From: Mantamonas sphyraenae STR306
Taxonomy: Eukaryota; Protista; CRuMs
Direction of reading: 5' to 3'
Assembly: GCA_026936335.1 (NCBI GenBank)
Contig: JAPMXV010000041.1
Span: 62,001-126,000 of the forward strand
Length of the DNA stretch: 64,000 nucleotides
Both the position numbers and the translations under genes were made by a program. How positions within the stretch are numbered: position 1 is the first letter of the stretch; every line of letters starts with the position of its first letter. Under the pieces are notes generated by a model that made no database searches, had not been told where the DNA came from, and was given only the letters and a program-made list of their open reading frames with translations. Below are positions 53,401 through 62,315 of the stretch, piece by piece.

Positions 53401-53546
53401 TCGACACCAAGATGGAGAGCTACACAGAGGCCGCGGAGGATCTGGACGAGGTCAAGGACTTTGTGAGCAACACCATGCGGTATGTGAAGAGCAAGCAGGA
53501 GGGAGAGGAGGCTGCCAAGTGGAAGGCGATTGTGGTGGGAGCATGA
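50490..53546 (+). CDS. VPS35: Retromer subunit VPS35, 5 exons
   Basis: [83 protein letters not shown]; AATAAA at 53593-53598. Confidence 0.97.
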
Positions 53547-53619
53547 GCATGAGCATGAGAGCTGTATTTTTCGTTTGTGCGTGAACGCACTCAATAAATG
53601 CACTCAAACTCACATAAAA

Positions 53620-53770
53620 TACTTGACCATGTCCAAAAGTCGGCTTACTTCGGGACAAATGGCTCCCAGGGCATCGTTGCTGTCTGCCCTGGGCACACCG
53701 AGCGGTGGCTTGCGCTCGGTGATCTTCGCAGCTCCAGTCGTCGATGGAACTGCCCTCACATCCTGTTCAC
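53620..53770 (-). ncRNA. Candidate Fanzor omega-RNA scaffold / element end
   Basis: Four consecutive hairpins directly after the Fanzor stop: 53728-53753, 53696-53721 (perfect 9 bp), 53665-53693 (perfect 9 bp) and 53627-53662, then CAAG-TA and AT-rich host flank. Confidence 0.7.
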
Positions 53771-56700
53771 TCACCCTTCCGTACCGGTGGTGACTTGATC
53801 ATTGGACGTGGCTGTGGCTGCTGCTTCCTTCTGTCTGCTGAATGGCATGGGTCGTTGTCCCGATTTGATTTGTTCAACAATGATCCAGAAGAATGCTTCG
53901 CAGGAGTGCTGGTCTCGCTGCATCGCCACGTGCAATGGAATGTCCTCGTCGTTGTGGATTTCCCGTTGCAGCAGCGCAAACAACGTCTGCTTTCTGGTGT
54001 GGTGATTGCGCGACTGGTAGCCGCATGTTTTGCAGAACTGGAGCCTGCCCAGGGGTTTGCGCGACACATTGGTGTTGAAGCTGAGTGTCGTTCCACACCT
54101 GTGCACACTGGATGTGCCATACTCGTCCAGGTCCTTGACCACGTTGTAGTACACGGCCAGCTTGTCCAACACGTCGCCCGTCCGTCCGCCGAGGCTTGAT
54201 TGTTTCTTTCCTCCCACCACCAGCACGTGCTGTTTTGGCATCCCTCTGTTGGCCATGAGTTTCTGTGTCTCTTCGATTGACCGTTGCAGGAACTGCGCCT
54301 GGATACGCGTGCCATGCCTCCGTCGTCGCATCTCGTTGTGCGTCATCGTCGGGATCGTCATCTGGAACACCTTGTTGTTGTGTGTCCACATGAGAACCCA
54401 TGTGTCCCGTGTGACGCCCCAATCCACCAAGGCGAACAAGGTGTCGTTGACAATGGACACCCACTTCTCCTCCTTCACGGTGTCTCCGTCGTTGCCACCG
54501 GGGTCATCGACAGCACCAGCATCCACCTCGCTCTCCTGTGCCTCGCCCTCGTAGTTGCCGCCTGTATCGTCGTCTCTGCCCTGTGCACTGTCCGTCCCTG
54601 GTGCCGCACCCACTTCACCTTGTTGTGTCTCCCTCGACGCCGACCCGATCGTATGAAACTTGCTGACCCCCCGGGACCCAACGTTCCGTCCAAGGTCCCG
54701 CAGGCGCCCATACTCCGACTTGTTCACGAAGGGAGCCATCCATACGGGCAGGGTGTTGGAATACTGCAGGATGTTGGTCGCTGCTGTGAACAGTGGTCCG
54801 GAAACCTTGTTGAGTCGGTTTTTCCCAGTGTCCTTGTCGCTGCTCTTGTTGTTCTTCGCTCGCGTTTGCATCTCTGCCTTGATACGCCAGAGATGGGTCA
54901 AACACTCATGCTCAATCTTGGCCACCAGTGCGCTGTGCGTCTCGGTGTCGTTGTGGGCGAGCGGGTCTTGGACCAAGGTTTTAGGATAGAACACGATCGC
55001 GGCTGTCCCGGCCGACGATACGTGCGTCGTACCTTTCCAGTGGTGCAGCTGAGTAGGACGCATTCGCATCACGGCTGTCGTGTTGGCCGCAACGCTCGCA
55101 AACATGTCGTCGAACAGCGAGGTCGCGTCCTCGCCCAACGACGCCCACCACCTCGACACTGCACAGCGCACCTTTTCGGGGAACTTGCCTTTGTGCGTCT
55201 TCCACAGCTCCAGCACTCTCTTCCAGGTTGCTGTGCTGATCGAAAGCGCCTTGCCGTTCTCTCCCAGCGTCACAGCTGCCTTCACTGCCTGCCATTGTGT
55301 GTCGTTCTCCAGCAGGAATGGGATCAGCATCGTCTTGGCGTCCTCCGGAGCGAGCATCATCCCCACATCCGCCTCCTCCAGTGTAAGCTGCGGCAGCAGG
55401 TTGTGCAGGATGCAAAGCGGCGCGTTTGCCAACGCTTTCGCCTTGTGCCCCTTGCTCTCGGTCGCAAGCATCGTGCCGTTCGGATCGATGGCCTTCAGCA
55501 GCTCCCTCGCCTTCAACAACAGCATGCGGTAGCTCCTGGATCGTCTGATCTCACCCGCCTTGGTCACTGCCTGTGTTTGCGCGTTTGTCCGTTTCTGCGC
55601 CGCTTCAGCTGCGTGGGCATCGTAGGCAAACCCCAGGGCAGCCTTGCACACACCATGGCGTGTGAATGCCTTGTGAACGCCCCCGTTTGGGTGTTCTTCA
55701 CTTGATGCGTCGACAGCTGCAAGCAGGGCAGCCTCGCGGATACCCTGCGCTCCCGGTTCTTGTGCTTCAGCGTAATTAACCAGCAGAGTCACGTACAAAA
55801 GCGCCCTCTTGCTGGTCACCACTTGCTTGAGCCTCGACGTCACCATGTTGGCCAGGAGCCAGCGCATGCGAGTGGCCGCAGCACCCAGGTGGCTGATGTC
55901 TGGGGCAGTGCAGTCCACGCTGCATGTGTTGCCGCCGTCCTTGCTCACAATGCGTCCTGTCATCCTGTCCACGTACAGTTGTCCCTTCACCTTTGTCAGG
56001 ACATCCCACACGAGGCCATCTTTTGACGCACTGGTCATGTACTTGACGGCAGTTTCAATTTGGGTTTGGTTGCATCCCTGAAGGACACCGACAACCGCAT
56101 TGACAGCCGTCAGCACACATGGGACAATGTCGTTGTATGTGTCCGCCAGGCGCTGAAGAAGCTGGTCTTCGCTTTCGAGAGCGTGGAACCCGAGGTCACC
56201 GAGTTGGGCGACATTGTGAATTGCCCCAAGGCCAATGGGAATGGTGGTGTCTTTCACGCCTGCGTCGGTCATAGCAGTTTGGATGAACTCGGTCACGTCC
56301 TGGATCAACAGGTCCTGGTCATCTGGTGGAGGCGCGCTTCTTGAGGTGCGTTTGCGAGGGCGTCGCTGCAGTTGCGTCGTGTCGTGCTCAACGCTCTCCT
56401 TTGGCATGTCATCCAGCGAGCCTATGGCATGGGCAATGCGTTCTTCGCCTTCGTGTGCTCCTGTGTGAAACGCCGCCGCGGTTTGAGTTTCGTCGTACAG
56501 CGAATTCTCTGCCAAGCTGTTCAGGTCTGCCTCGGTGAACTCGATTACCTTTTCGAAGGTATTGATGTCGTGCAGGAGCACACGTGCAGAGCAGTGCCCA
56601 TTCAACGCATCGGCTTGTGCCCTGAGGACCCGCTGGAGTGTGACCACCTGTGAGTGCGCCACGCCCATCTCTACGCCGCTGGAATCCACATGACCCTTTG

Positions 56701-59541
56701 CTGCAAGGTTCTCAGCCATATAGTCCACCAGGTAGTCCCAGACGTGGTGTCTGAACGCCTCCATGTCCATCGCGGCTGCAGTCCCTTTGCCTGGGTTCTG
56801 AACGTGTTCGGCGCGGAGTGTGGCCAGATTATGAAAGACACTCACGGCCTTGTCGTCCTCGTCATGCATGATGGATGCCAATGCCATCTCTGGCTCCTCC
56901 AGCTTGAGGTAGAGCTCCATCTTTCCAGACAGCGTGGCTGTGGCGCTGTGAAGCGGACGGTGTGGGAGGATGAACCTGGCACCGCCGTCGACAAACAGAG
57001 CCGTCCGCACGGCCGCGCACATGCACGCCCGCCCGCTTGTGCTCTTGATGGCCTTGCCACCCGATACAATTTCGATGTTGATCTCTGCCCCGTTCAGTTC
57101 GCCACATAGAAGCAGCAACGTCCCGAGCCACTGCTTTGCCCGTGGAGACGTCGAGTGCAGCCTGAAAACGGTGTTGTCCGTGCTGTTTCTGAGCAGCTGT
57201 ACGATGGTGGCTTCGTCGGCTGGGGTGTGTTTCTTCAAGGCCTTGGCGAGCCTGAAGTAGGGCCTCATCTGCCCCGCCTTCTTGCCGTTGTAACTCCACA
57301 TCCTGCTCGACGAGATGAGCAAACGGCGCTGCATGCTCGCTGTCACGCCTGGGGCACCTTCGATGATGGCGTCATGAGTTGCGATCCCCAAACACACGCA
57401 AGCCTGTGTTGTTTTGTCCGGCCCACCGACCTTTCCGAACGCGTACGAGCCCAAATCCACCACGTCGATGTACTCCCGCTTGTCCGCTTCCTTGTCATTC
57501 TTCTCTTTGTTGGCCTTTTCTTCTTTCGCCTTCTTCTCCTTGGCCGTCACCAGCTGTTCAAGCGCCTTTTGCGACGTGGTGGGTTTGCCCGGCAGGGCAC
57601 CGCGTAACGCCGCAAATCCTTGTTCATCCTTTTCCTTGGCACCCTTCTTGAGCATGTTGTCGCCAAACGTGTAGCAGACAACGTGCACCTGGTGTGCAGC
57701 ACCGTTGTTTCCACGCACATACATCATCTTTGCGTTGGCGAGCGAGTACTCCAGCTGGCCAACCAAGTACTCTTCGCTCGCCTGCAGGCAGGCCTGTTTC
57801 TCCTTTTCGCGCTGGTTCTGTTGCTGCTCTCGCCTCTTTTCTGCAGCACGCCTTTTCTTGTTCCGCTTGCCACGGCCACCGCCACTTGCTTTGCGCCGCT
57901 TGTTGGAGTTGCTCCCCGTTTCTCTGGTGGGAACGGCGGGCATGGGCAACCTGGTGATTGACGACTCGTGTGGACGCACCGGCGCAGCAGCAGCAGCGTA
58001 TGAGCATGGCTCCGTGGTCCCGACTGTCGCGTGGACGACACCAGGCAAATTGGGTGTCCACTCGACCGAGCTAATGGCGTCGTCGTTGAACTCGAGCCAC
58101 GTTCCTGTGTGGATACGCACCATTGCAATGTAATGACCGGCGTTGGCATCTTCGGATGGGTGGTACAGCATCACAGTGTGCACTTGCGCCGCAACTTTCA
58201 CAGCCAGGTTGCTGGCAACAACTGCGCCGTTTTCGTATCTTCCGTGGTTGTACGTGTACACAGCAGTGGGCGTGGAGCGCAACTCAGTCGTACTCTTGCC
58301 CTGGATCGCGGGCTTACTCTTGCCTTGGATCGGGGTCTGTGGGCACTCGCTGCAGTTCCATTCAAACGTCCCGCCTTGGGTAATTGGATGAACCGGATGA
58401 TCAAGGAAGAATGCCTCTGTTTTGCGCGACGAGAGCTCGTGCTTGCACTCCGGGCAAACGGCATCCGACCTCACAACGACGACGCCACAAGGCAGCGCCC
58501 CGAGGTCGTCCAGGGGGGTGTCTTCGCGTACCGCTTCGAGTACCCCATCCACGAATTGTGTGTGCCCTTGGATGAACTCTCCGAGTGTTAAGAGTCTGGG
58601 AAGGGACAGTGTGTGTTGGCTATGGTCAGCGACGGAACGGCGTTGTTGGAACGACGATCGCCAAAACTTACGCCTCTGTGGACGCCTGTTGCTTGCGCAT
58701 CTTTTCTCCGCGCTCGGTGGAGAACCACGCATGGAGCAGAATTGCGGCCTTGGAGGCCGCGTCCTCGTCGTTGCGTCCGTTCCCCATCATGTGTGACCAC
58801 AGACACAAGAGAGAGCGGAGTTGCCAAGTGCGCTGAATTGTCTGAGTGCTCCAGTCGCAGATGCCTCTGCCGAGTGCAATTAGGAGGACACGTACGGCCA
58901 CAGTCATGTAGCACAGTACCGCGCGCACGTTGCTGTGTTGGTGGTAGGGGAGGGGAGGGTGTGTGTTGGTGATTTGGGGAGGGGAAAAGAGTGCACCTTG
59001 CACGCTGCACGCCAGAGGATGACACCACGGGAAATGCTTACCGGATACCGCGACGTGCATTCAACATGTGTTCCACCACGGGGTTGGCCCCAGCAGAGTA
59101 CTCTCCCTCGTCGTCAGCACCCAACGTCTCGAAGAGAAACCCGACAACACTCTGGTCGATTTGGGGCGCAAACTCCTCACACAGACCGTTCACGGCGGAA
59201 TGGATGGTCTGCGGTGCATCTTGTTCCTGTGCAGGCGTGCCCCCAGTGTCTACTACAACAGGTGTCAGCGCTTGGCGCGCAGCCGAAAAACGAAAACACA
59301 GGCAGGATAACGCACAGCTGCGCTCCAAAAACGCAAAACACGCTGATGGGGTGCTAGATTGCCAATCAAACTCATCACTGGTCGGCTCCTGATGGTGATG
59401 GTGACTCCCGACATCGGGAGGTGTCGGTGCGAAAGTCGATTCGTTCTCCGCGGCGCCAGCTGCCGCCAGCATCCGTTCTGCCACCCTTCTTGACCGGCGA
59501 GGCCCAGTTGGGGCAGTGTTGCCCGGCGTCTCGTCACTCAT
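53771..59541 (-). CDS. USP (peptidase C19)-Fanzor1 fusion protein, ~1861 aa; exons 59541-59042, 58932-58672, 58595-53771
   Basis: USP Cys box GIRNVRAVLCYM, QQASTEALL, two CxxC, His box GHYIAMVR..W.EFNDD. RuvC-I LVDWG, RuvC-II VLVVG...DEYGTSSVHRC, CKTC, RuvC-III QRD, C-terminal GQRPMPFSR. Both GTAAG..CAG introns are phase 2 and keep the frame (5586 nt total). Confidence 0.8.
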
Positions 59542-60237
59542 GGTGTTGCGTGCCGGGTGGATACGTTGTCGACGCCCGCGCCAAAATCCGAATCCTGAAT
59601 CCAACCCATTCTCATATCCACCTTCATGCTGCATTTCCGACACGTACATACACTACAGGACACGGAGATTAGATACCGGAGTTGTATGACATAGCTGGTG
59701 GTGTCAGATGCACCCGCCTGGGGAGCCGCCAATTCGATGTGCGCTTGCGCTCGTCCAGTCGATTCATGGGTCGTGAATCCATACCACGCGCACGCCAAAC
59801 ATACGCGGAGTATCTACATACCCGCTCTGGTCATCGGTAATCATCCAGCCAGTGTGGAACGAGATTGGCCAAGGCTGCACGCCGTGCCAATTTCAGCGCA
59901 CTGGTCCGGCGCCCTCAACCCTTGTCAGCGACCTGTGCTTCAGTCAGTGAATGCACGCTCACGGCCCGTAGCAGCAGATCAGATCAGCTGCCGTGTTTAC
60001 CCGGATGCAGTTGTTTTGGTTTCCCGGACGTCGCACGGGAAGACAACAGCAGCAAGCGAGGCGGATGATGTGCAAACCCCGTGATAGTGTGGATCTTTAT
60101 CGGTGTGCACGAGGCCCCTACGGTGCCGTGTCTCACTCAAACAGACGTCATCGACGGGAACACAAGCCGTAAATGCTGTGCAATTTCATCGCAGGTGTGC
60201 CAAGCCGTCCCGTCGTTCTTTTGCCACCTGGAGAGTT

Positions 60238-61168
60238 CCATGTCGGTTGTGGGATGCCCGGGATGGTGTACAAGGAGCGTGGGACACCGTGCCGGTGGTT
60301 GCGTTGGAGATCGGCAGCGAATGACCCCGGCGCTGGACAACCTTCCCATTGCGTCCCTTTCGTAATTCAAAGTGTGCTCCATGTCGGTTGTGGGATGCCC
60401 AGGATAGTATACAGGGAGTGTGGGACGCCGGGTTGATGCTGGCGTTGGAGATCGGTGTGGTGAATGATTCGTGTGCAGAACAGCCCTGCCATTCCGTTCG
60501 AACCGAGGTTGGTAGAGTGTTCCATGTCGGTTGTGGGATGCCCGGGATGGTATACAGGGAGTGTGGGACACCGGGTTGATGCTGGCGTTGGAGATCGGTG
60601 TGGTGAATGATTCGTGTGCAGAACAGCCCTGCCATTCCGTTCGATCCGAGGTTGGTAGAGTGTTCCATGTCGGTTGTGGGATGCCCAGGATAGTATACAG
60701 GGAGTGTGGGACGCCGGGTTGATGCTGGCGTTGGAGATCGGTGTGGTGAATGATTCGTGTGCAGAACAGCCCTGCCATTCCGTTCGAACCGAGGTTGGTA
60801 GAGTGTTCCATGTCGGTTGTGGGATGCCCGGGATGGTATACAGGGAGTGTGGGACACCGGGTTGATGCTGGCGTTGGAGATCGGTGTGGTGAATGATTCG
60901 TGTGCAGAACAGCCCTGCCATTCCGTTCGATCCGAGGTTGGTAGAGTGTTCCATGTCGGTTGTGGGATGCCCAGGATAGTATACAGGGAGTGTGGGACGC
61001 CGGGTTGATGCTGGCGTTGGAGATCGGTGTGGTGAATGATTCGTGTGCAGAACAGCCCTGCCATTCCGTTCGATCCGAGGTTGGTAGAGTGTTCCATGTC
61101 GGTTGTGGGATGCCCGGGATGGTATACAGGGAGTGTGGGACACCGGGTTGATGCTGGCGTTGGAGATC
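60238..61168. repeat. 143-bp tandem repeat, ~6.5 units, with A/B alternation (286-bp higher-order repeat)
   Basis: The unit start CCATGTCGGTTGTGGGATGCCC occurs at 60238 (diverged), 60379, 60522, 60665, 60808, 60951 and 61094. Confidence 0.97.
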
Positions 61169-61299
61169 GTGCAGGGTTTTCACATATTGTGCTTGGTTCA
61201 CTCCCCACATGAGCCGCTTTCCAAACGCAGAGCATGGTGGTCTATGGCAGCCTTGTGCAGATGTCCACGCGATGATGATGCCGCCATGGCCTTTCTTGG

Positions 61300-61884
61300 A
61301 GAGGTGTCGACGCCCGGTTTTACGACGACCTCCACACTCGCAGGTCGACTCCAGTCTCGTCGGCCCACACTATATTCTTTGCGCGCATTCGTGCATCTGT
61401 GCGCTGCAGCCGTTCAAACTCGCGCCGCCGCATACGCACGTGCGGCTTCTCTTTCAGCTGAGAGATTCTTCAACTTTTTCAGTCGCAACTGATGCCGTTG
61501 GCAGAATATACACAGTGTAGCCAGGGAAACTCGAAGATGGAATTGTCTCGTCAAAGCCAGCCGCATCTCATCAAGATACGAGGCACTGTGCTTCGCTATA
61601 CGGCGGACAAGGGATCGTTTGTGGTGCGCCTGCAATTTTCTGGCCGCCCACCGGCACGAAGTGGAGTTGCCACACCTCCTGTGACACGAAACTGGGCAAC
61701 GTACTTGTGCACAGCACCTACGCTGACCTTCCAGTGCAAGGCTACCTGCTTCATTGATTGCGGGGTTTGCGTTCAGGTAGCCGTTTACTATGTTGAGACG
61801 CATCGCTTCCGGGATGGCTGAACCAGACTTGTACACCCCACCGTGTGTGTTGATCTTGAACGTTGGGTTCATTGCACTGGGCAT
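61300..61884 (-). pseudogene. Frameshifted, truncated IS630/Tc1-mariner transposase with a paired-like HTH
   Basis: INTHGGVYKSGSAIPEAMRLNIV..., VSVGAVHKYVAQFRVTG (shifted frame), YLDEMRLAL..VSLATLC...LRLKKL, and first catalytic motif VWADETGVD (61345-61370). No second D or E motif found. Confidence 0.75.
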
Positions 61885-62315
61885 GTTGGTTTGGTGACAA
61901 TTGCTGATCCGTCAGGTTGGCGTCTGGTGCGCCTTGTCCATCACACCTGCTTGACATCCCTTCTCGTCCACACAATGCATTATTCGCAAGGATTCATTGT
62001 TTCCATTGTATAGATGACTTTGGTAAGCTTCTTTCAGTGCACGTGGAAACCGAGGGGGAGTGGGAACGATTGGCCGATAGAGCACAGCCATGAGCACACG
62101 CCAAACCGGGGTGTGAACATCTCTGTGATCACAAAGAACCCACAGAGGAGTGATATCATGCCTCGGTGAACATTCTATGTGTTTCTGGGCGTTGTTCTCG
62201 GTGGTGGAGCCATGTTCACGCTCAATTGCAACCAACTGAGCGCGAGTGTCGTGGCAAACAAAAAAATCGCAATCGAAGGGGCACCATTGAGCAGATCGAC
62301 TTGTGGGCAGCGGTG

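Follow-up and report, generated by a model that had tools for sequence, protein, structure and literature searches.

Gene structure of a predicted USP-Fanzor fusion

The window analyzed here is a stretch of 64,000 nucleotides from the genome of the deep-branching protist Mantamonas sphyraenae STR306 (C41:62001-126000 in a host assembly of 25,061,354 bp and 78 contigs). The organism belongs to the CRuMs group and is diploid (PMC10492846). On the reverse strand of the window lies a giant gene that is predicted to join a ubiquitin-specific protease (USP) fold and a Fanzor-type RuvC nuclease in one polypeptide; Fanzors are eukaryotic relatives of CRISPR-Cas12. Profile searches, fold matches and conservation among copies support this reading. 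The gene is the cargo of a multi-copy IS630/Tc1-type element, in which a broken transposase is followed by the giant gene and then by a structured 3' end that looks like an omegaRNA. An earlier note on this DNA had proposed the fusion, and our tests support it; its coordinates covered the fusion gene but left out the transposase, the element ends and the 3' RNA, and so the transposon context.

Removing introns 59041-58933 and 58671-58596, which have GT-AG borders, from 59541-53771 leaves a single frame that stays open over 1,861 codons, as the earlier note described. That note missed a third intron, predicted at 59315-59253, which has GT..AG borders and a branch-like CTGAC motif. Its homologues in the copies on contigs C2, C46 and C43 are 65, 71 and 61 nt long and shift the frame unless spliced. 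Because they must be spliced to keep the frame, the third intron very probably exists, and with it removed the predicted protein is therefore about 1,840 amino acids (aa) long rather than 1,861. The motifs and catalytic codons that had been quoted all lie where they were placed, and the Cys box is indeed split by an intron, whose position is kept in six copies. Database searches and folds of the fusion protein were made exon by exon; the joined model was used only for the frame check and the copy comparison. The features of the gene are as follows, with their basis in brackets.

59316-59541, reverse strand: exon 1, low-complexity N-terminus (frame and copy comparison)
59253-59315, reverse strand: predicted intron 1, 63 nt, in frame; acceptor could be 59250 (same position in five other copies)
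59042-59252, reverse strand: exon 2, ending within the USP Cys box, G-I-R (frame and copy comparison)
58933-59041, reverse strand: intron 2, 109 nt, interrupting the Cys box (position kept in six of six copies)
58672-58932, reverse strand: exon 3, predicted USP thumb with Asn147 (58929-58931), Cys153 (58911-58913) and the QQ box (GI.N....LC invariant in six copies)
58596-58671, reverse strand: intron 3, 76 nt (conserved position)
57995-58595, reverse strand: predicted USP fingers and palm, with zinc-ribbon CxxC pairs at 58456 and 58354, His387 (58133-58135) and Asn403 (58085-58087) (PDB profile matches)
57780-57910, reverse strand: K/R-rich stretch resembling a nuclear localization signal (sequence; basic in the other subfamily too)
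54640-57780, reverse strand: about 1,050 aa without an assigned domain (31-67% identity between subfamilies; purifying selection)
53828-54469, reverse strand: predicted RuvC and zinc finger of Fanzor type, with Asp1624, Gly1694, Glu1724, HxC..CxxC, Asp1794 and RP tail (alignment, model, profile)

For the copy comparison we used seven loci with a shared 3' end, six of which carry the fusion gene while the seventh, on C51, is internally deleted. The six fusion genes are 37-97% identical; four are intact (1,840-1,856 aa), and those on C43 and C46 are broken. Domain order, the three intron positions and both catalytic triads, which had looked intact in the window copy, are kept in all six. A single exon of about 1,608 codons holds both the USP His box and the RuvC region, and four copies have it without interruption; on this ground we reject two separate genes. 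Conservation and purifying selection rule out a chance open reading frame (ORF).

The ratio of nonsynonymous to synonymous substitution rates (dN/dS) is about 0.2-0.4 in the domains. Between the window copy and the C2 copy it is 0.31 for the USP, 0.19-0.30 for the middle region and 0.19 for RuvC, the most constrained part of the protein (0.08-0.19 in the copy comparison). The linkers flanking the domains are of low complexity and relaxed, reaching 0.8-0.9 before RuvC; in the C46 copy a 66-bp unit in this linker has grown to about 3 kb, with frameshifts, and sister copies have the repeat in shorter form. The synonymous difference between the window and C2 copies is about 0.55 but falls to 0.04-0.23 in the final 300 codons, and their RNA ends are 99% identical; window positions 53562-54700 are nearly identical to the C2 copy, as against about 62% identity elsewhere. 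This pattern marks a recent exchange of the RuvC-plus-RNA module between copies that have otherwise diverged.

The N-terminal protease domain

A USP profile built from the last-exon part of five copies was compared with PDB, and all 60 matches shown were USPs (best E-value 3.6e-7; then Ubp8, USP12/46, USP14 and USP7). Searched against the organism's own genome, it returned the six element copies first and host USPs next. In Pfam, the last-exon part matched UCH with an E-value of 1e-3 and 19.2 bits, below the gathering threshold of 23.9, and exon 3 alone, which carries the catalytic Cys, had no match. An Atlas feature search led to a cluster of compact giant-virus USPs at 0.92, with 10 of the 10 best family-bearing matches in agreement; we treat this as a lead only, and it does not show viral origin.

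The sequence has a candidate Cys box, then a QQ box, two zinc-ribbon pairs, a GHY His box and finally W..F[ND]D, which is the order canonical for USPs (peptidase C19, including the compact USPs of Nucleocytoviricota), with the same His-to-Asn spacing of 16. The Cys box (G-I-x-N-x4-L-C) and the GHY His box are invariant in all six copies, and W..F[ND]D follows the His box in the five copies still in frame there; the Cys/His/Asn(Asp) triad is conserved, with identity over the USP region falling to 29% between copies. The fusion differs from known USPs in its sub-cut-off Pfam score, a one-residue insertion in the Cys box and an altered QQDAxE box, which reads QQ[AS]STE. The oxyanion Asn stands at -6 from the catalytic Cys, whereas in textbook USPs it is one residue nearer (-5). 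These features point to a putative USP-fold cysteine protease, with ubiquitin as a possible substrate. Because the Cys and QQ boxes are divergent, the domain could instead act on a ubiquitin-like modifier or cleave its own chain.

The C-terminal RuvC domain

The predicted catalytic residues of the nuclease are encoded at 54422-54424 (Asp), 54122-54124 (Glu) and 53912-53914 (Asp). In an alignment of eight diverse RuvC regions, all from this genome, the D, E, TS, CG, CxxC, RD and G-x-x-P motifs are invariant, the catalytic triad standing at D16, E116 and D186. An AlphaFold2 model has a confident RNase-H-like core, with a predicted local distance difference test score (pLDDT) of 85-95. The Foldseek search of this model placed SpuFz1 at the top; VIA matched it to nucleases of the RuvC, Cas12 and terminase kinds (Z 8-10), with no preference for Fanzor, and an Atlas structure search gave generic RNase-H-like folds only. 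Of the matches that the earlier note had expected, USPs came up in the PDB profile search (best E-value 3.6e-7) and SpuFz1 in the Foldseek search (1.7e-3); the Pfam UCH match stayed below cut-off.

A profile search of 1.8 billion representatives gave weak RuvC matches (E-values of 2e-6 to 8e-4), several of them with a TnpB/Cas12f zinc ribbon and Fanzor-like motifs. The best are 580-930 aa long with a TNB zinc ribbon and RP tail, and hhalign gave a probability of 96% to one. We rejected the top representative match, P0001, as an artefact (a repeat-rich HYR surface protein, matched over 29 columns), and PDB sequence matches to the RuvC region, including enterotoxin B subunits, as chance (E-values of at least 0.25). 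Neither the RuvC part nor the full last exon had a significant Pfam match; the RuvC region and the USP alignment each drew a blank in word-index searches, and scans of viral and metagenome contigs returned no relative. Across the word-index, profile, viral and metagenome searches, no sequence relative above about 25-30% identity was found outside this genome.

Fanzors are marked by Gly or Pro at the canonical RuvC-II site and by a Glu that precedes the zinc finger by about six residues (PMC10530073, PMC13565253). This rearrangement is present: Gly1694 occupies the canonical site, and Glu1724 is followed by His1731 and Cys1733. Bao and Jurka (PMC3627910) gave the Fanzor motif as D-X(125,275)-[TS][TS]-xx-C4 finger-X(5,50)-RD. 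Motif order and RD spacing fit; the finger is H-C-C-C here and C4 in a sister family. The shifted Glu and the RP tail are in line with the earlier assignment to Fanzor1, made from a DE(Y/F)xTS motif and that tail; the D-to-TS spacing, about 103 aa, falls short of the motif. The gene is accompanied by a DDE transposase, not by an IS607 serine recombinase. On the counts tested, which cover sequence and model, the nuclease half would work like a Fanzor1, and it is a candidate member of that clade.

Between the two enzymes, the K/R-rich stretch may serve as a nuclear localization signal. The roughly 1,000 residues that the earlier note could not recognize had no Pfam match and a blank Atlas feature search, and profile comparison with Fanzor1-like N-lobes or a sister family was not significant. 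These approximately 1,050 aa should hold the REC/WED lobe.

The gene is carried by a DNA transposon

The seven loci have a common 3' end that terminates at the same base, with unrelated flanks beyond it, and the left end is also common to all seven. These shared ends delimit the element, whose features outside the fusion gene are the following.

53562-62238, reverse strand: whole IS630/Tc1-type DNA transposon, 8,677 bp (sharp shared ends in seven copies, unrelated flanks)
62213-62238, reverse strand: left end, imperfect 26-bp terminal inverted repeat (17 of 26 positions match the right end, inner 9 bp exact)
61300-61884, reverse strand: IS630/Tc1 transposase, broken by deletions and frameshifts (intact in four sister copies)
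60231-61169, no strand assigned: 143-bp tandem array, 6.6 copies (expanded here alone among the copies fetched)
53562-53770, reverse strand: candidate omegaRNA scaffold, four hairpins and a terminal stem, 209 nt (shuffles, compensated pairs)
53542-53561, reverse strand: predicted guide, made up of host flank and overlapping the stop codon of VPS35 (position by Fanzor1 analogy)

The element is inserted 15 bp past the VPS35 stop codon, directly upstream of the nucleoside-transporter gene. Varying flanks among copies, together with the transposon ends, rule out a domesticated host gene, and a proviral stretch is ruled out by the ordinary host genes on either side (a gamma-tubulin complex component, VPS35 and a nucleoside transporter, by Pfam).

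Four sister copies have an intact transposase of 346 aa with helix-turn-helix and DD34E; the one on C11 matches Pfam DDE_3 with an E-value of 2e-24, and its relatives, which share about 30% identity with it, belong to the DDE_3 transposases. The C2 copy has lost the gene. Insertion sites are G-NN-C with NN variable, not TA, and the duplication can be read as 2, 3 or 4 bp, the parse being ambiguous. The terminal inverted repeats are imperfect across copies, matching at 14-18 of 26 positions. In other words, the canonical hallmarks of the IS630-Tc1-mariner (ITm) group, TA duplication and perfect terminal repeats, were not found in the seven copies: the element works like an ITm element but is no canonical TA-inserting member.

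The 143-bp array lies between the transposase and the Fanzor gene, with two frames open on the element strand. The deleted copy at C51:522458-523299 is 842 bp long and retains both ends and the RNA end; it lies 159 bp away from a stretch that is identical, in one BLAST match, to window positions 61842-62000, the shared left-end region. It is consistent with a ghost element that keeps its RNA end. The left end has 18 matches in the genome, and the eleven without this right end (on C8, C45, C62, C53, C25, C30, C58, C10, C55 and C31) may carry other cargo.

Other giant Fanzor-like genes in the genome

The RuvC profile has at least 48 matches in the genome, most of them in ORFs of 1,400-2,100 codons and falling into several families. 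By the USP profile, only six of these Fanzor-like loci carry this USP. A second family (L021-L028) consists of eight copies of about 5.5 kb without a transposase in cis, each a single ORF of about 1,720-1,760 codons (broken in L025). The family has a conserved 3' end of 190 nt that differs from the one described here, and Pfam assigns no domain to the N-terminal 1,400 aa. Neither Pfam nor two large protein databases had revealed the wider set of at least 48 RuvC matches, all from a single 25-Mb genome.

The 3' RNA end, predicted guide and junctions

The 209-nt 3' end folds with a z-score of -5.1 relative to shuffles and has a sharp boundary in seven copies, where it abuts variable flank; it is kept even in the 842-bp deleted copy. 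Five base pairs have changed on both sides between the two subfamilies, which are two independent lineages only, so that this is modest evidence for the structure. The 3' end had no match in Rfam. By analogy with Fanzor1, the guide is predicted to be the host flank from 53561 downwards. At 53541-53561, beside the right end and within the predicted guide, a 6-bp unit that includes the stop codon of VPS35 is present three times over, and the copies on C11, C2 and C46 likewise have short repeats after their right ends. These repeats are possible repair scars or excision footprints. YTG stands at the end of five of the seven left flanks and is a candidate target-adjacent motif (TAM).

Junctions were analyzed in 15 copies from the two families (7 + 8), with 98 cross pairs as a control. 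In 5 of the 15 copies, 7-8 bp of the right flank are repeated at the left junction, where they overwrite, in register, the first 5-7 nt of the element, a pattern seen in 0 of the 98 cross pairs; it occurs in three of the seven copies of the window element's family (C11, C2 and C46) and in two of the eight copies of the second family (L022 and L028). These footprints are consistent with homing, in which a cut empty allele is repaired from the filled one. A similar pattern, with duplications of 7-19 bp, is known from 5'-truncated Chlamydomonas CRe Fanzor1 elements (PMC3627910).

Comparison with known systems

With Fanzor1 (SpuFz1, GtFz1, PpFz1; PMC3627910, PMC10432273, PMC10530073, PMC11423790) the element shares a split C-terminal RuvC, Gly at RuvC-II, Glu before the zinc finger, RD and the RP tail, as well as spliceosomal introns, a basic stretch resembling a nuclear localization signal, a structured right end after the stop codon and a ghost copy with the RNA end. 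It differs in its short RuvC-I-to-TS spacing, in His as the first zinc ligand and in length, about 1,840 aa with an N-terminal USP and about 1,050 unassigned aa, compared with a typical 600-700 aa. Size by itself, which the earlier note took to be unusual, has precedent among giant Fanzor1s already listed (PMC3627910). The parts of Additional file 1 of that paper on Polysphondylium Sola2 elements give Fanzor1s of similar size (PPa-1, 1,699 aa; PPa-4, 1,827 aa; PPa-7, 1,756 aa), likewise with introns and transposon-borne, in another transposon superfamily than here; those passages report no protease domain, and a crude text check found no His-box tripeptide in them.

Mariner/Tc1-borne Fanzor1 elements (PUl-1, ROr-1, MCi-1, PGv-1; PMC3627910) have an upstream DDE transposase, a co-oriented downstream Fanzor and short terminal inverted repeats, as here; the present element differs in its G-NN-C sites instead of TA, its imperfect repeats and its length of 7-12 kb. 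Fusions of transposases with proteases (Ginger1-OTU/Ulp1, Mutator-Ulp1, Helitron-OTU, Trichomonas transposase-C19; PMC2836005) likewise combine a DNA enzyme of a mobile element with a papain-fold deconjugase. There the partner is a transposase, whereas here it is a predicted RNA-guided nuclease, so that the protease would be sequence-addressable. Extra domains are described as frequent in Fanzors by Jiang et al. (PMC10530073). In full-text literature searches, neither a fusion of Fanzor with a deubiquitinase nor any study of Fanzors in Mantamonas came up, in keeping with the earlier note, which knew of no such fusion. As far as these searches go, what is new is the fusion of Fanzor with USP; Mariner-borne Fanzor1, Fanzor1 of up to 1,827 aa, and transposases joined to OTU, Ulp1 or C19 are already published (PMC3627910, PMC2836005).

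A proposed mechanism and its alternatives

We consider it reasonably likely that a transposase mobilizes the element, that a Fanzor-omegaRNA complex cuts empty alleles and so drives restoration or homing, and that the USP, being part of the same protein, works in cis to act on ubiquitin or a related tag, carried either by the fusion protein or by factors at the break. In outline, the IS630/Tc1 DDE transposase would cut and paste the element, in cis for the sister copies and in trans for the window copy. The giant gene would give a single protein in the nucleus, and its C-terminal RuvC of Fanzor type would bind an omegaRNA that is transcribed from the right end of the element and reads into the host flank as the guide. 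The complex would cut the empty allele (the homologue in a diploid, or the site after excision) beside a TAM, probably YTG-like, and repair would copy the element back in. The N-terminal USP-fold cysteine protease, brought to the same site, would remove ubiquitin or a ubiquitin-like tag; its most plausible substrate would be the giant protein itself, which would be stabilized, or local chromatin or repair factors, favoring copying over end-joining. A role in repair has been proposed for transposon proteins fused to OTU, Ulp1 or C19 proteases (PMC2836005). The analysis establishes the anatomy of the element, the single ORF, the conserved triads, purifying selection, the structured 3' end and the junction footprints; from these we infer expression, ribonucleoprotein formation, cleavage, the TAM, protease activity and its substrate.

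Several observations weigh against this mechanism. Most giant Fanzor-like ORFs of the genome are without this USP, which is thus not required for the family. The fold evidence is individually weak, with a mean pLDDT of 47 for the model of the USP half-domain, whose zinc-ribbon fingers are confident and whose first 18 Foldseek matches are all USPs at E-values of at least 0.014, and with SpuFz1 as the best RuvC fold match at 1.7e-3. The Cys and QQ boxes deviate from the USP consensus, and the RuvC-I Asp-to-TS spacing lies below the 125-275 of the Fanzor motif. The REC/WED lobe was not located by Pfam, Atlas or profile comparison, splicing and the omegaRNA are predicted, and the long duplications in the USP-Fanzor family could alternatively come from excision footprints and re-insertion.

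The divergent Cys and QQ boxes would also suit a self-processing or SUMO/NEDD8 protease that cuts a 1,840-aa precursor to an ordinary-sized Fanzor. The compact giant-virus USPs as nearest Atlas cluster, the presence of the SUMO-cleaving USPL1 among the weak fold matches and the relaxed linkers flanking the domains argue in the same direction. The zinc-ribbon fingers, which in USPs hold the globular body of ubiquitin, are nevertheless retained and are the best-modelled part of the domain, and no conserved cleavage motif was noticed, although no systematic search was made; we regard this alternative as unlikely. We think it more improbable still that the system is a guided effector more than a nuclease, its RNA bringing the deubiquitinase and the roughly 1,000 unassigned aa to selected loci, where they would open chromatin, sustain expression of the element or guide transposition, with cutting secondary or absent. 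The large conserved middle region under purifying selection would fit such a role, as would the RuvC core, which is short for a Fanzor1 motif and has His in place of the first zinc-binding Cys. Yet the D-E-D triad is invariant in eight diverse family members, RuvC is the most constrained part of the protein, and the junction footprints suggest breaks. That the USP is passive cargo, taken from host or virus in a chance fusion by a plain Mariner-borne Fanzor1 element, seems very improbable to us: other giant Fanzor-like ORFs do without it and the N-terminal part diverges faster than RuvC, but the triad and three introns have been kept across saturated synonymous divergence, with the dN/dS of the USP well below one against C2 (0.31).

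A broader extension of the homing mechanism is more tentative, and we hold it as possible but doubtful. The genome may contain a radiation of about 45-50 giant Fanzor-type RNA-guided platforms with swappable N-terminal enzymes; in the present one, an active deubiquitinase delivered by the omegaRNA would edit ubiquitin on chromatin or repair factors and steer its own cut towards homing. If true, this would be a naturally evolved programmable nuclease-plus-deubiquitinase.

The fusion may let a transposon act on protein tags at its cut site. As far as our searches go, it would be without precedent among natural RNA-guided nucleases in carrying an enzyme of the ubiquitin system, and it would show a bacterial-derived OMEGA nuclease adapting to eukaryotic chromatin and proteostasis. 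The system opens two questions to experiment. One is the role of Fanzor1 in eukaryotic DDE transposons, for which a diploid cultured host, a near-chromosome-level assembly, many copies and junction footprints are at hand; the other is the reason for the repeated uptake of OTU, Ulp1 and USP proteases by transposons.

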